Part shown: in pieces, positions 5,107-43,921 of the stretch
Numbering within the stretch: the stretch's first letter is position 1
Layout: each line of letters begins with the position of its first letter
Assembly (NCBI GenBank): GCA_037447605.1
Contig: CM074811.1
Span: 1,736,001 to 1,800,000 of the forward strand
DNA from: Zygnema circumcarinatum SAG 698-1b
Lineage: Eukaryota > Plantae > Zygnematophyceae
Direction of reading: 5' to 3'
Length of the DNA: 64,000 bases
The notes under the pieces: generated by a model
Databases searched by the model: none
Told to the model about the DNA's origin: nothing
The model's input: only the letters and a program-made list of their open reading frames with translations
Translations under genes and position numbers: made by a program

Positions 5107-34260
<29,154 letters not shown>

Positions 34261-34296: not shown

Positions 34297-34672
<376 letters not shown>

Positions 34673-35182
34673 TAAGGCCCTTCCTCGTCCTCTGTTGAGA
34701 AGCAAATTGAAGTTGAAGCATTTGTATGGGACTTGGGTGAAAAATTGTTCATAGAATTCTTCAACGCAGTCATGTGGAAGTGTAAATTCAACTCAATAGC
34801 AAGAAAAAGGCAGGTTCTAGGCAGGCATTCTCTTTATTTTTCTTTAGAATTAAGTGTGCTTGTAGGGTGTGGAAGACATAAACAAGTTCAGAATGGGAAA
34901 ATGATGTGGCATTGATCTCACGATAGCGACGCCATCAAATGTACACGGACAAAATCGACATGGGGAACCACGAGGAACTGGTCGCGAAGGACCTAAGAAC
35001 AATAGGAAAAAGCTATGAGTGGAAATCTACTTCTATTTCAGAATCAGTTCACAATCGCCTTTGAGTACAGTTCGCAATGAACATGATCAAAATTACAGGG
35101 ACTGCAAAGTAACGAGAAAGGATTACGCAGAAAACAGTCGTTATGAGAATGAACTAAGTGTTCTCACTACTACTGAAGGAGT

Positions 35183-36503
35183 TCACGCCAATACCGTGCT
35201 TATTCCTTTGGGCATTTTCCCCAGCATCATCTGCTTCACAGGACATTTGTCTGCAACACCGAACTAGAAAAAGACACGTGAGCGAGTACACAATAGGCCT
35301 GAGTAAAAGGACCAAAAACAAATTTACAGTTGAGACTTGATAGCAAACAATCGCCACAACTAAATTCGAACTAATGAACGACAATAGCAACAAGTTAAGC
35401 AATCTCAAGACAGTTCACAATATCTGAACTAGAAAAGGCAATATGATGCGAACCAGCAATCTGAAGGAGGCGAGATTTCTGCTCCTCGCTGAGTTGACCC
35501 TCCAGGTGGAGTTCAAGAACTAGACCTTCCGAAATGTGGCCGGCTGCTTCCCCCTTTCCAATCACAGTCAGCATCAGTCTGAAAATGGAAACTTGAGCAA
35601 TGACAAGGGTGTCGATCTCTACAGGCAGCAAAGCGAAGGCAAAAGGCTATCAGCTAAGCTATAAAGATAAATGGAAACAGGAAGCTCCTAAATGAAACAG
35701 AGATGATGTTTATAACATTAAAGACAAAAAAACGAAAAGCATGGGAGCATGTCATGCAAGTTAATGAAGGGGATAAAACTTAGGACCTTGCACGCTGGAA
35801 AGAGAGACTGCAAAGAGAGACATTGAGATAGAGAGGGAGAGAGTGGGGAAACGTCCTGATGAATTTGTTTAGAAGGGTGGATAGGGGGGGGGAAGAGGAA
35901 AAAGTGACAACTAGGAAACGTAAAAGTGATGGCAGACCCTACAAGACATACGGAAAGGAGATCGGACAGAAGAGACGAGTTCAGGTCAGGTCAAACCACC
36001 TAACAATGATAGAAGAATTGGGAGTGCACTCACGGGTTCTATGGCTGCACTCCTTCACTTCCACTCGCACATGCGTGAGAGGCCATTCCTTCCGATCTGC
36101 ATACTGTTTATCCCTTCGGACCTTTTAAGGGCCCAATCTGAAGTCTGCTGGGGTCATTAACTGTTCAATCATCATGCTCCTTCCTTCTGAAAGATTCAAA
36201 ACCATAACCATAGGTCCATTTAGTTCGACAAGGTATAAGGGCAATGCAGCACAGTTAAGTAGTACCGCCTTTTTAACAGTAACTTGCGAATAGGAGTATG
36301 CTATACAAAATGCTTGAATGGACTACGAAAGAATTATTTTTAACTATTAGCATCTTTCTAAATCCACAGAGCACTAAGCAGACTTTTGTTCTTCAAGGAC
36401 TTAGCAGCTGAATATAGTTCAAAAAGGGGCAGAAAGGCGACCCACCAATCGAAGAGTCATCGAAGTACAGAGACCGACTGCCGCAAGAGCGAGTTCTTTG
36501 GGC
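35183..36503 (-). CDS. OsmC/Ohr-family (YhfA-like) dithiol peroxidase-like protein, 5'-partial, 4 exons visible
   Basis: Exons 36446-36503, 36034-36103, 35454-35543, 35183-35250 (GT-AG, phases match) translate to PKELALAAVGLCTSMTLRL-YADRKEWPLTHVRVEVKECSHRT-PGHISEGLVLELHLEGQLSEEQKSRLLQIA-DKCPVKQMMLGKMPKGISTVLA*. This matches the OsmC-like pattern P.ELL.AALG.CT.MTL.MYA.RK.WPL ... LEG.L.EEQ..RLL.IADKCPV with both conserved Cys. The acceptor at 35543 is the best of several candidates. Confidence 0.85.
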
Positions 36504-36760
36504 CTGCAAGCGCACCCAATAATACCAAACACAGCTAGGATGACAGACAAAGCAACGAGAGGTTTCAGAAAATGCTAAAAAAACATCAAAAGTTCCAAAC
36601 GATGAAGGCTCGACCAGGAATCGATAACAAACTCTTCCAAACACTTCAGGTCAATGAAACAGCTCAAAAGAAAACCTTGAATGAGTAACCTTTTCATCAC
36701 AAGACCTGACCACTGATACCCAAATAAAACATACAAGAGCATGAGAAATTAGAGGCTTTT

Positions 36761-36860
36761 NNNNNNNNNNNNNNNNNNNNNNNNNNNNNNNNNNNNNNNN
36801 NNNNNNNNNNNNNNNNNNNNNNNNNNNNNNNNNNNNNNNNNNNNNNNNNNNNNNNNNNNN
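36761..36860. other. Assembly gap (100 N, size probably unknown)
   Basis: Run of exactly 100 N, flanked by a (TCCA)n repeat at 36861-36885. Confidence 0.99.
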
Positions 36861-37374
36861 GCATCCATCCATCCATCCATCCCTCCGTCGCACATGGAAA
36901 GCCATATCTTCAAAAATCCAAAGCTCGAACTAATGACGGAACTGCGCCTTTCAAGGGGGCATGCACAAGGGGAACGGAATGCCATAAAGACGATACTCGC
37001 CGTTGGATCGAAGAACGCATCCAACGGTCCTGATTTGAAGCAGGTCCGCCGCCGCCTCCCGCCGGAAAGCTCGGACTGACGCCTTCCAACGGGCAGCGAC
37101 TCGTGGTTCGTGATGACGTCATGTATTTGTCACTGAAAGCCGTGTACTTGTCCGTATGTGGAGTACAATTGTACTTCCAACCGTACATACCATGCCCATG
37201 CCCATGCCCATGCCATCGCATGCCATGCCATTGCCATGCCCGTTCTCTCACTCCGGCAGTGGTAGTGCTCTTTCGCGCTACGACTAGAGGCGGGGTTTGG
37301 AGCTTCACGTTGCAAGAGCTGTCAAAGGCTGGTTGAGGGAGAAGCAGGCGTGGGAGCGAGGAGAAGGAGGAGGG
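36861..37374. promoter_or_regulatory. Putative bidirectional promoter between the OsmC-like gene (-) and ABCF4 (+)
   Basis: Divergent genes. Contains three TCCAACGG (MSA-like) cores at 37000-37095, four GTAC cores at ~37145-37186 and a (CCATGC)n run at ~37190-37240. Confidence 0.55.
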
Positions 37375-40300
37375 ATGGTGAGGCCTAAGGAGAAGGCAAG
37401 TGCGGCGACGGGAGGGAAGAAGGAGTCCAAAAAAGTGACATCTGTCAGTCAGATATCACTGGAGGAGCCGAAGGCGAAAGCCCCCCCAAGGCAAGTAAAA
37501 GGTAAAGGCAAGACGCCGGCGAATGATTATTTGGCAGGGGTAGACTTGCCGCCCTCGGATGATGAAGAACCGGAGGTGCTGAACTTCAGAAGTGATGAGG
37601 AGAGCGATGATGACGATGATGAGGATGAGAGAAGGGGAGGCAGAGGGAGGGGGAGCGGAGTGGTGCATGCGGTGAGTTTCCAGGTTACGGACCGGGAGCT
37701 GAGGAAAAGGGAGAAGAAGGAGCAGTTACTTGCTCAAGTTCAGGAGCAGGCGAAACAGGAAGCCTTGAAGGAGGATGATGATTCTGCTTTTTCAGTTACT
37801 CTGGGGGCGAAGTCGGCTGTTCTGGACGGAGAGGAGGGCGTGGATGATAAAGCGAAGGACGTTAAGGTAGAAATTTTTTCGGTTTCTGCACGCGGTAAGG
37901 AACTGTTCAGGAACGCTTCTATAACTATTGTGCATGGCAGGCGCTATGGCTTGGTAGGTCCTAACGGGAAGGGCAAATCGACACTGTTAAAGCTTATGGC
38001 TAAGCGGCAGTTACCAGTTCCGAAAAACATCGACGTACTACTTGTGGAGCAAGAGGTGGTAGGAGACAGTAGATCGGCTCTCGAGGCAGTCGTCTCAGCT
38101 GACAAAGAGCTGATGGAGCTCAGAGCTGAAGAAGCGAGGCTTAGGGCTATAGCTGAGCAAGAGGGAGAGGAAGAAGTGAGTACGGTAGAGTCAACCAAGG
38201 CGGGGGCAGAGGCTGGAATAGAGGAGGACAAGGACGCGAATGAGAATGAAGACGAATTGGAGGATATGGAACATGATGATGATGACGATGTGGATGAGCG
38301 ACCTGTTTCCAGAAAAGGAGCTGCAAAAAAGTTACACGGAAAAGACAAGCAGCATGTTAAGGGAAAGGGGAAGGGAATGAAGCCAAAGCATAAAGGTGGT
38401 GCTAAGGACGAAGTTGTTGAGTCTGCTCGAGGTGAGGAGGATTCCTTAACAGCTGGCGAGCAGCTTGCAGAGGTTTATGAACGTATGCGGATTATCGGTG
38501 CTGAAGCTGCGGAAGCACGAGCATCGAAGATTCTGGCGGGGTTAGGTTTCACAAAGGACATGCAGGTACTGGGGTATCCAGGATCTCAAAATTTCTTTCC
38601 ACTTGCGAAAGGAACGCCAAATCTTGACCTTTTATTGTACTAGACTCCAACAGTTTTTGAACGGCTTGCGTGTTTTTATAATGCACAGTGGAGTATGCTA
38701 TATGGCATCTGCTCGAGAGCTCTCCTTTTGTAATCAGCACTTACAATTAGACTTGTTTTGACAGGCGATTTCACAGTCTCATGAAGCCAGTTTCATACCC
38801 TGAGAAACCCTCTTCGTGTGCAGGGCCGGGCAACAAAGTCGTTTAGCGGAGGCTGGAGAATGCGAATTTCACTTGCTCGAGCTCTTTACGTGCAACCGAC
38901 GCTCCTGTTGCTTGACGAACCCACAAACCATTTAGACCTCCGTGCAGTCATTTGGTTGGAAGAGTATCTGATGCGGTGGAAGAAGACTCTGATTGTCGTG
39001 TCGCATGATCGTGATTTTTTGAACTCTGTTTCCACGGACATCATACATCTACATGATGAAAAGCTCTTGTTCTACAAGGTCAGTTCTTCTTGTCTTTGCC
39101 CGTACAGCCCCTTATGATCATTTTGGAAAAAAATAATAAGCAGGCGCTGCGCCTTGCAACCTCAGCAGGGCTTTGACCGACAGAAGGGAATAGACAACGT
39201 TGGTCAATGAAAGATTTAGAGATGGGCGAAAGAGAACGGAACACCTCTCCGTTATGAAGAATTCCAAGTGTGATATTTTAGAAACTTAACGTAGTGCTGA
39301 AGGAAACCCTACTTTTTTTCCGCTCCCGCCCTCCCTTTTCTGCCTCTCTCTGTCTTTTCCTCCTTGCAATCTATTTACCCCTTAAAAAAGCATGTGGCAA
39401 CTCAGTTCATGGAACACCTGAATTTTATAAAATGAACTCAACAATAATGCATGTTCACTTCCACTGTCCTGATTTAGATCTCAAGGTAGTCACTTTTTTT
39501 TTCATATGTTTATGTGACTAATGGCAAGTAACTTTGTTTGTTTTAACTTTGTTTTTGGTTCTCATCTTCTTTAGCAATTCGCATTTGCCCAGTGATCCTA
39601 TCCATTCCGATTGACCATTTACAGTATGTCTCATAGCTTCAGCACCGGGCAATTCCTGAAAAGCAAGTTGTTGTGGTGTAGGCTCTGTGAGAACCTCTTA
39701 CTTCCTGAGCAGGATTCAGACATTTTTAAAACATTGGTACGTTTATTTGGATCTGCAGGGCAATTTTGAGGCCTTTGAATCAATGTATGAACAGAAGCGG
39801 CGCGAGAACAATAAGAAATTCGAAACATTTGAGAAGCAGCTCAGGTTAGCCAAGCGGACTGGGAACAAAGCCACGCAGGACAAGGTAAAATTTCCTTGTT
39901 GGATCAGACCAATTTTTCTGAACTATGTCGGAGCTTGTGTTTTCAGCTCAGGCATTATCATTTGGAGTGGATGCGGATGTGCGAATTGGTGAAGTTTGCT
40001 AAGTTCGCCTGGTATGTGAGCAGGTGAAAGACAAAGCAAAAATGGCTTCTCAGAAGGAGGCGAAGAAAGGCAGGAAAGGGGGGCAGGCAGCACAAGAAGA
40101 CGAGGATGCGCCGGCTGAAGCGCCCCGGAGGTGGCGGGACTACTCTGTCGAATTCCACTTCCCGGAGCCGACAGAACTTACACCTCCCCTTCTGCAGCTC
40201 AAGGATGTAGAATTCGGATATCCAGGAAGGGAGGATTTTTCTTTGAAAAGAATCGATGTCGGTGTGGACATGGGGACGAGGGTGGCCATAGTTGGACCCA

Positions 40301-41033
40301 ATGGGGCAGGGAAGTCAACTCTGCTAAATCTTTTAGCCGGAGATTTACAGCCCACCAAGGGGGAGTCTCGGCAAAGTCAGAAACTCCGAATTGGAAGATA
40401 TTCGCAGCACTTTGTGGATCTTCTGCAGTTTGACGAAACGCCTGTGCAGTACCTGCTGCGGCTCTACCCTGACCAGGAGGGTCCCAGCAAGCAGGAGGCG
40501 GTGAGGGCCAAACTGGGGAAGTTTGGGCTGCCCAGCCACAACCATCTTACCCCCATTGTAAAACTCTCAGGAGGACAGAAATCTCGGGTGGTGTTCACAT
40601 CCATTTCAATGAAGAGGCCACACATTCTGCTACTGGACGAGCCAACAAATCACCTTGACATGCAGGTAATGTCGCCGTAGTTTGCGGGACGTGCCTCTCG
40701 AGCAGGCATGTGCTGAATTTGTCTTAAGTTGTTGTCAATCTGAAGGATGCGGCTTGCCCTTCTGAACATGTCAAGGAGTTAGAGCTCACACTTTTTTTTT
40801 ATGACTTTTTGCTGCAGAGTATTGATGCGCTAGCAGATGCCCTTGACGAGTTTACCGGCGGAGTGGTGCTGGTGAGCCATGATTCACGCCTTATCTCCCG
40901 AGTTTGTGAAGACGAGGAACGTAGTGAAATTTGGGTGGTGGAGGATGGGACTTGCAAAAAGTATCCAGGCAGTTTTGAGGAATACAAAGAGGAGCTCATA
41001 AAGGAGATTGTTGCGGAAGTGGAGGAAGATTAG
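37375..41033 (+). CDS. ABCF4: ABC transporter F family member 4-like (ABCF1-type soluble translation ATPase), 5 exons, ~809 aa
   Basis: Exons 37375-38565, 38824-39078, 39759-39884, 40024-40665, 40818-41033. Two NBDs with Walker [10 protein letters not shown] and GPNGAGKST, signatures FSGGW and LSGGQ, Walker [13 protein letters not shown]. No TM domains. The N-terminal DLPPSDDE and linker [23 protein letters not shown] match plant ABCF4. Confidence 0.95.
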
Positions 41034-42421: not shown

Positions 42422-43921
42422 TCAGGATGATGGCCCCTCAGTGGATGCATGATGCGCCCTTGCTTGCGCCATTTGGGCAGCCCAAGACCCCGCCTTCGGA
42501 GCTCTTCTGGCTTTGAGACCCCCCATCTGAGACTCCACCTGGGCTTGCCAGCTCTTCATAGCCTCCGTCTGAAACCAAACCGCATTTCATCTAGCCGTGA
42601 AAACAAGGCTTAAGAGTAAAGAATAGACGCTACAGATTGGTACTAGTTATGTCGGGACTGATTGGATAGAGATCAGTGTAGATTGGAAGATGACTGAAAG
42701 TGGGAACTACAGCCAACCGTATAAAATTGCACAGGTAACTGAAGAACGTAAAGCACATCGACTATAGCAAATCTGTGAAACTCTCCTAAAAAACCCAAAA
42801 AAATCCTGAGCTTGACTTCTACACTCTTAACGTTCAGCAAAGTGGTATCCAAAACACACGGGCAAGAAATACACCCTTTATCCGACGAAAATTCAGAGAT
42901 ATTCGTGAGTTATGTCAAACCTACGCTTCCTGCCTTGTACTTACAAATGCAAGAAACCTCGAAAACTGCCAAGCATTGAATAAGTTGTTTCTGCAGTGGT
43001 TCTTTTTAGAAGAAAGGAAAGAAAGCCCATAGCTTTCAACCCTAATGCGAAAAATGCTTTGCCTTTGTGCTTGAGCTGTGGTTAAGAGTGCCACATGCAG
43101 GAAGCCTACCGGAGACAGATGAACGACCTAGATTTAAAGGCAAAGGTGAAAGGGGCATTAGACCTTGAAAATGAGCAAGAATATCAATATGAGATTAAAA
43201 TGGAGGACATTTTAATCTCATAAAAATCAAATTATACGAAAAATTGGCAGGTCGAGGGATGGTTACCGTCGTGTTATTTTGCAACCGTAGTAGCCATAAA
43301 TCGGTGATAAAATGCTGAAGCTAAGATATTTCTCAGCTTCACATACGGGGCAGGACCAGGAAAACCAGTCCAAGAAACCTGAACTTGTTTTCATCCCCTC
43401 CATGAAGTTTATGTTTTCAGAAAATTCCAGCATACCTGCTCTTCTGGAGAGGACCACCGTGCCTGAGTTTCCCATGGCCGCCTCCTTTGCTGCCATGGCC
43501 GCCGCCTCCCAAGGCCCTCCCCTCTCCTTACCCTCCCGGGATTCATCATCTCGTAGTCATACAGGGCTCGCTGAGCAGGGTCTGACAACGTTTCGTAGGC
43601 CTGCTGGACCTCTATGAACCGGCGCGTGCACTCTTCCGGAGTTAGACCGTCGCCCCTACACACATCAGGATGGTATCTGCGTGCAAGCTGCCTGTATGCC
43701 ACCTTTATCTCCGACGTCTTCACAGTCCGAGAGAGACCAAGGAGAGAATAAAAGCAGCTTCCAGACACAGCTTCTTCATCCGACGACCGAGGCGCACTCT
43801 CTGTCTCCACAAATGCCGCTTTTGTGCGAATGCCGCACCGCTGCGCAGAACCGGCCCGGGGCCTTGCAGACGTTACAGCAACAGTGCAGAAGCAGAACTG
43901 CGACGCCGACGCTGCCAACAT
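42422..43921 (-). CDS. J20: Small chloroplast DnaJ protein, J20-like, 2 exons, ~210 aa
   Basis: Exons 43436-43921 and 42422-42568. Ser/Ala/Arg-rich transit-like N-terminus; J domain FYSLLGL..EIKVAYRQLARRYHPDVC..FIEVQQAYETLSDP.QRALYD with HPD; C-terminal WQAQVESQMGGLKARR..SWAAQM resembles the J20 tail. Confidence 0.85.

Follow-up and report, generated by a model that had tools for sequence, protein, structure and literature searches.

The window, the whole stretch of 64,000 nucleotides of Zygnema circumcarinatum that was analysed, very probably holds the last four exons of a nuclear gene that is expressed and encodes a small OsmC/Ohr-superfamily protein with two cysteines, of the class termed YhfA or 'Ohr-like', the first part of the gene being placed in an assembly gap. 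With it, an alga that stands close to land plants provides one more verified and expressed member of the third OsmC class, which is uncharacterised.

Gene structure and transcript evidence

In a six-frame translation of 35100-36760, the motifs of the family (GLCTSMT, RKEWPL, LEGQLSEEQKSRLLQIA and DKCPV) are found on the minus strand, spread over short open stretches, and all of them fall within exons that are backed by RNA contigs. The four exons (Table 1) keep an open frame throughout and provide 95 codons, representing the C-terminal part of the protein. They are separated by introns of 342, 490 and 203 nt, all three with GT..AG ends. The first conserved cysteine lies in exon A, which shows the acceptor cag/G and the donor TTG/gtgggt, and the second in exon D. 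An earlier note on this DNA had proposed a gene of four short exons between 35183 and 36503; these limits are exact, as 35183 is the final base of the TGA stop codon and 36503 the first base behind an AG acceptor, and the splicing is borne out by GT..AG joints in contigs of the runs X1 and X2.

Table 1. Positions of the exons and of the other features around the OsmC-like gene (window coordinates; the slash in a joint separates the two exon bases that are brought together).
Feature	Position	Strand	Description
3' untranslated region	34968..35182	-	minimum extent; one 373-nt contig per run (X1, X2)
Exon D, coding part	35183..35250	-	2 bases + KCPVKQMMLGKMPKGISTVLA + TGA at 35185-35183; joint 35250/35454
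Exon C	35454..35543	-	90 nt: 2 bases + GHISEGLVLELHLEGQLSEEQKSRLLQIA + 1 base; joints 35543/36034, 35250/35454
Exon B	36034..36103	-	70 nt: YADRKEWPLTHVRVEVKECSHRT + 1 base; joints 36103/36446 (X2), 35543/36034 (X1, X2)
Exon B extension via alternative acceptor 36186	36104..36186	-	joint 36186/36446, X1 and X2
Exon A	36446..36503	-	58 nt: 1 base closing a split codon + 19 codons, PKELALAAVGLCTSMTLRL
3' part of intron upstream of exon A	36504..36748	-	retained in low-depth contigs
Assembly gap, 100 N	36761..36860	.	sole N run in the window

Seven public runs of the same organism contain the stretch, and the contigs of four of them (X1, X2, X8 and X9) were compared over 34900-37400, a region for which X8 and X9 gave no contigs. 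The joint 35250/35454, with sides of 90 nt, and the joint 35543/36034 are present in contigs of both X1 and X2, while the productive joint 36103/36446 is found in one X2 contig only, with a side of 29 nt. Every joint reads CT..AC on the plus strand and hence GT..AG in the direction of the gene. In both runs, the 373-nt contigs span 34968-35250 together with exon C, and contig depth in the exon bins is several-fold above that in the intron bins. Because of these joints and of the exon/intron depth pattern, X1 and X2, which are not on record as RNA, are inferred to contain spliced transcripts; the transcript check proposed earlier thus finds the exons joined in RNA contigs. A middle intron with its donor after 36000 and its acceptor before 35578 would also be in frame, but it was rejected, the RNA contigs using 36034 and 35543.

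Membership of the OsmC/Ohr superfamily

Family searches were made exon by exon. In Pfam, exon A matched OsmC with an E value of 0.018; its 15.9 bits fall short of the gathering score (27.5), and no match was reported for exons B, C and D taken singly. A scan of bacterial genomes for a back-translated WPL...ADKCPV pattern returned at least 117 genes, a biased set; among the matches listed, most are fusions of about 400 amino acids of an alpha/beta-hydrolase with an OsmC domain from Rhodobacterales, and some are stand-alone genes (Bacteroidota, Acetobacteraceae and others). PF02566 was found in all six bacterial relatives tested (61-73 bits), and tblastn of bacterial relatives against 34900-37400, a search space of 2.5 kb, recovered the four exons in order as linked HSPs with E values down to 1.7e-9.

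Since the pattern set had been picked by two of the window's own motifs, an HMM was built from 180 stand-alone bacterial OsmC-family proteins, obtained from profile searches and exclusively bacterial, and was run against the 2843 stop-free six-frame segments of the window. Only four matches had an E value below 1, and these are exons A to D, the next match being at 3.4. The four are collinear (23.0 + 18.9 + 18.1 + 12.1 bits): exon A covers HMM positions 46-65 (E 2.8e-4), exon B positions 65-100 (E 8.6e-6, the best match in the window), exon C positions 98-121 (E 1.5e-4) and exon D positions 119-132 (E 0.019). Chance open reading frames are rejected. The window gene has two conserved cysteines about 60 residues apart, that of GLCTS at HMM column 58 and that of DKCPV at column 123, and both columns hold Cys in 180/180 bacterial relatives. 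The Pro ahead of the exon A helix, invariant in the relatives, is also kept, and profile-to-PDB alignments place the two Cys of the window on those of solved Ohr and OsmC chains. Assignment to the OsmC family with cysteines at both catalytic positions, as first suggested, is therefore supported by the exon matches and by the invariant Cys columns, the exons being matched one by one by an OsmC profile, a PF02566-type HMM. As for the OsmC-like fold read from the four exons, the family match stands, but the exons make up only about two thirds of the domain.

The window gene has the same domain as bacterial stand-alone proteins annotated as 'putative redox protein' and described as COG1765/YhfA-like (among them the relatives P0225, P0204 and P0203 (Polyangium sp.)), with which it shares the invariant Pro, both Cys and the motifs CTSMT, RK.WPL and LEG.L..EQ..LL.IADKCPV. 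The bacterial genes are intron-less, encode 126-129 amino acids and have Tyr after the Pro, whereas the window gene has introns and a Lys.

Subfamily and catalytic residues

The NCBIfam models for Ohr (TIGR03561) and OsmC (TIGR03562) have cut-offs of 88.85 and 85.8 bits, respectively. The nearest bacterial relatives reach 13-34 bits on them, and the single exons of the window gave no match to either model. The catalytic residues point in the same direction. Indeed, the window reads P-K-E, with Lys where Ohr (NPEQLF..AC) and OsmC (NPEELI..GC) have the catalytic Glu after the conserved Pro, so that the Glu directly after Pro, ten residues before the peroxidatic Cys, by which the Ohr subfamily is recognised, is absent; the same position is Tyr in 155/180 relatives. 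The catalytic Arg of the first beta-hairpin loop maps to the N-terminal part, outside the window.

A third class of the superfamily, the YhfA class of Shin et al., has both Cys without the catalytic Arg and Glu, as summarised in PMC8945050, and the 'Ohr-like' class of PMC5384416 likewise keeps both Cys while catalytic Arg and Glu are absent; both names denote a class defined by exclusion (PMC5384416, PMC8945050). It is reasonable to place the window gene, whose Arg position lies outside the window, as a putative member of this third class, neither Ohr nor OsmC proper, because the Cys pair is kept, the Glu is replaced and the relatives fail the Ohr and OsmC models. The earlier guess of a YhfA-like subgroup is thus a reasonable one.

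Comparison with known proteins places the gene further. E. coli YhfA and the 'Ohr-like' proteins (Micromonas, Trichomonas TvOsmC; PDB 3cje and 2pn2) have two Cys and no Ohr/OsmC Glu, as in the window; the class occurs in eukaryotes including a green alga (PMC5384416, PMC8945050), and the likeness to the window lies in class features, 3cje and 2pn2 matching the window profile weakly (E 1.6e-5 to 3e-3). The Ohr genes of Physcomitrella patens and Klebsormidium flaccidum (PMC5384416) are, as the window gene, superfamily genes of non-vascular streptophytes, but they have the catalytic Arg and Glu, whereas the Glu is missing from the window gene, whose relatives score below the cut-off of the Ohr model.

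Searches of solved structures were made with two profiles, A3 and A4, in which most or part of the rows were bacterial and each of the four exons had a row of its own. Both rank 9wo1 first (E 8e-45 and 9e-37, respectively), a fusion-type protein of 400 residues named 'osmotically inducible protein C', ahead of Ohr, OsmC, 3cje and 2pn2 chains at E values of 1e-5 to 1e-2. The OsmC domain of esterases with a C-terminal domain of this kind (EstO/EstRM, PMC5113044; PDB 9wo1) is thus of the same subtype as that of the window, 9wo1 being matched by A3 and A4 far better than any Ohr or OsmC chain.

Proposed function

As for other OsmC-fold proteins, the product would act as a homodimer. The helix-borne Cys of GLCTS would attack an oxidant or electrophile, the oxidised first Cys would then form a disulfide with the second Cys, in DKCPV, and the disulfide would be reduced by a dithiol partner. 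The protein would come close to an even chance of having some other thiol-disulfide, redox or detoxification role, a real hydroperoxide-reductase activity would be possible although on the doubtful side, and the remaining probability falls to other roles.

The reading of the earlier note, a true Cys-based organic hydroperoxide reductase of the Ohr/OsmC kind recycled by lipoylated proteins, is rather unlikely. In its favour, both Cys align with those that are peroxidatic and resolving in solved Ohr and OsmC, a Glu lies one residue past the canonical Glu position (PKE), and TvOsmC, an Ohr-like protein, had peroxidase activity in one study as cited in PMC5384416. However, Lys occupies the canonical Glu position, Tyr being found there in most relatives, and these relatives fail both the Ohr and the OsmC subfamily models. 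Moreover, the OsmC domain of the esterase-OsmC family showed no peroxidase activity with either H2O2 or cumene hydroperoxide (PMC5113044), Meireles et al. found TvOsmC to be inactive (PMC5384416), and the YhfA class is described as biochemically uncharacterised, its function one that 'remains to be investigated' (PMC8945050). The words 'peroxidase' and 'lipoyl-dependent antioxidant route' are not supported, Lys being found at the position of the catalytic Glu and the related esterase-linked domains having shown no peroxidase activity (PMC5113044). This calls for caution against naming such genes 'peroxidases' on two cysteines alone.

In one metagenomic bacterial contig (L122, 3001-4718), there is an overlap between the relative P0204 and the end of a gene for an NMT1-type binding protein, and genes for an FMN reductase and a glutathione S-transferase lie downstream; this neighbourhood fits a redox or detoxification setting.

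The 5' end and the assembly gap

In contigs of X1 and X2, 29 nt are spliced onto exon A at 36503. They are non-contiguous with it in the genome and have no match within the window at up to 3 mismatches. In the mRNA sense they are in frame with exon A and free of stops, reading PDGSPAEAP followed by an E that is completed by base 36503. Upstream of exon A, the retained part of the intron has no open frame into exon A, with a frame-0 stop near 36577. A low-depth contig of 344 nt spans 36474-36748 and then continues for 69 nt that are unlike the window sequence. No contig covers 36832-37251, and nothing in the 64-kb window matches positions 1-45 of the bacterial HMM, nor is there a start codon for the gene. 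Because of the unmatched 29 nt, the diverging 69-nt contig end, the missing depth over 36832-37251, the single N run and the unmatched HMM positions 1-45, the scaffold gap at 36761-36860 most probably hides the start codon, at least one 5' exon and the N-terminal third of the domain. Therefore, the adjacency of the OsmC-like gene and the ABCF gene represents a scaffold join. With its start in an assembly gap, the gene may be overlooked or shortened by automatic annotation.

The last 12 bases before the gap (36749-36760) do not agree with the sequence by which the transcript contig continues past 36748, and a (CATC)n microsatellite is found just past the gap, with a second simple repeat further on (36861-36894 and 37184-37240). 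The contig ends at the scaffold join by 36761-36860 look unreliable.

It is improbable that the four exons encode the C-terminal domain of a larger fusion protein, for example of an alpha/beta-hydrolase (esterase) with OsmC, whose N-terminal exons lie in the gap. Fusions of about 400 amino acids make up most of the bacterial pattern matches, the best solved match is a fusion of 400 residues, and the 100 N of the gap need not reflect its true size. On the other hand, the pattern set is biased, the most similar proteins among the matches listed are stand-alone, with 126-129 amino acids, and the interval from the gap to the ABCF gene shows neither a hydrolase-like exon nor any contig depth. EstO/EstRM-type proteins carry their alpha/beta-hydrolase domain at the N-terminus, the part of the window gene that most probably lies in the gap, and they differ from the window gene by a longer loop between the equivalents of exon B and exon C.

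Alternative splicing

Besides the joint that leads to the small two-cysteine protein, contigs of X1 and X2 contain the joint 36186/36446, at a depth of 67.9 in X1 and 62.3 in X2. The use of acceptor 36186 makes exon B longer by 83 nt and turns the frame to K-E-G-A-stop, and this isoform is therefore unproductive. It is the sole form assembled in X1 and makes up roughly half the X2 depth, contig depth being a poor measure; in X2, the premature-stop acceptor is thus about as abundant as the productive form. Intron-retaining contigs are also present among the assembled contigs. Acceptor 36186 may serve regulated unproductive splicing.

These same forms would fit a decaying or non-functional gene that is transcribed and mostly spliced unproductively, with a 5' end that is perhaps not intact, a reading to which the predominance of the premature-stop form in X1 and the intron-retaining contigs lend some weight. 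It is nonetheless highly improbable, as all four exons are open, the invariant family residues that were checked (the Pro and both Cys) are kept, the 29 nt spliced upstream are in frame, and the productive joint occurs in X2.

Origin and distribution

The exons have a GC content of 0.52 and a GC3 of 0.53, to be compared with a GC3 of 0.51-0.58 in the ABCF exons, and the introns have 38-44% GC. The host-like composition and the three introns therefore indicate an old resident and not a contaminant. In line with the earlier view of a resident nuclear gene, the introns are spliceosomal and the sequence runs on without N into GCN1. Bacterial contamination or mis-assembly, to which the bacterial nature of the closest relatives among the matches listed might point, is effectively refuted by three spliceosomal introns with RNA-backed GT..AG joints, and also by exons contiguous with those of GCN1, host-like composition and at most 61% identity to the bacterial proteins listed.

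An origin from bacteria is plausible to probable, and would be an old one because the composition is fully host-like. The closest relatives among the matches listed are bacterial stand-alone genes in bacterial gene contexts. Over 69 core columns, the window protein is at most 61% identical to the bacterial relatives listed, with a median of 49% (50-72% per exon), as compared with a median of 64% for the bacterial relatives among themselves. The window protein is thus farther from the bacteria than they are from each other, and nothing suggests a recent transfer.

No eukaryotic orthologue is found among the best 120 matches of each of the profile searches with A3 and A4, all of which look bacterial, although one could rank lower. 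The 30 amino acids of exon C gave 0 matches at E<=0.001 against a large set of representatives, a query too short to be meaningful, and the 83-aa stop-free stretch around exon C (region 25-64) gave no candidate with three common words, a search that says only that the collection holds no near-identical protein of 46-145 amino acids over exon C. In the ESM Atlas, a search started from the best bacterial relative yielded no clusters other than bacterial ones. The read-through of exon C against the PDB matched FKBP5 only, which was dismissed as chance.

As to the distribution of the superfamily, 392 eukaryotic Ohr/OsmC proteins, many of them intron-bearing, were described by Meireles et al. in 2017 (PMC5384416). 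The holders include Chlorella, Micromonas (Ohr-like), Klebsormidium and Physcomitrella (Ohr subfamily) and Marchantia (PMC5384416), and the same work found homologues in green algae, mosses and liverworts and none in vascular plants (2017, PMC5384416). The picture of a patchy distribution with absence from flowering plants is therefore right but had already been published (PMC5384416). As intron-containing Ohr/OsmC homologues have been known from eukaryotes, including algae, since 2017, the gene brings no biology of a new kind. A further proposal, unlikely as it stands, is that a streptophyte alga, possibly a zygnematophyte, acquired a YhfA-type OsmC from bacteria separately, distinct from the Ohr gene of Klebsormidium and mosses, and that its output is tuned by the unproductive acceptor. 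Were such a separate acquisition true, it would offer a tractable eukaryotic model for a third OsmC class that is without an assigned function.

Genomic neighbourhood

The two neighbours named in the earlier note are confirmed. GCN1 is identified on the minus strand by a GNC1_N domain at 30753-31049, the sequence between the OsmC-like gene and the GCN1 exons being continuous, with no N; an ABCF-type gene is identified on the plus strand by ABC_tran matches from about 37375. Of the translation-stress genes, GCN1 is thus adjacent in continuous sequence and ABCF lies across the scaffold gap; a functional link to either is unsupported. The ABCF gene (37276-40680, plus strand) is head-to-head with the OsmC-like gene across the gap, with a transcript start near 37276, and its first long exon (422 aa) has a Lys/Glu/Asp-rich N-terminal extension ahead of the first ABC domain.

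At the other end of the OsmC-like gene, the summed contig depth at 34900-34999 reaches 934 in X1 and 4572 in X2, which is very high, and numerous distinct loose ends occur at 34959-34999. It seems that many further transcripts or loci contain a copy of a short stretch from the gene's 3' end; no second copy of 34900-34999 was seen within the window, and Rfam found nothing over 34300-37400. Further along, at 43409-43921 on the minus strand, an intron-less open reading frame of 170 amino acids, for which the collection lists no gene with an identical product, carries a DnaJ domain (E 8e-20); its N-terminus, rich in Ser, Ala and Arg, resembles an organelle-targeting peptide.
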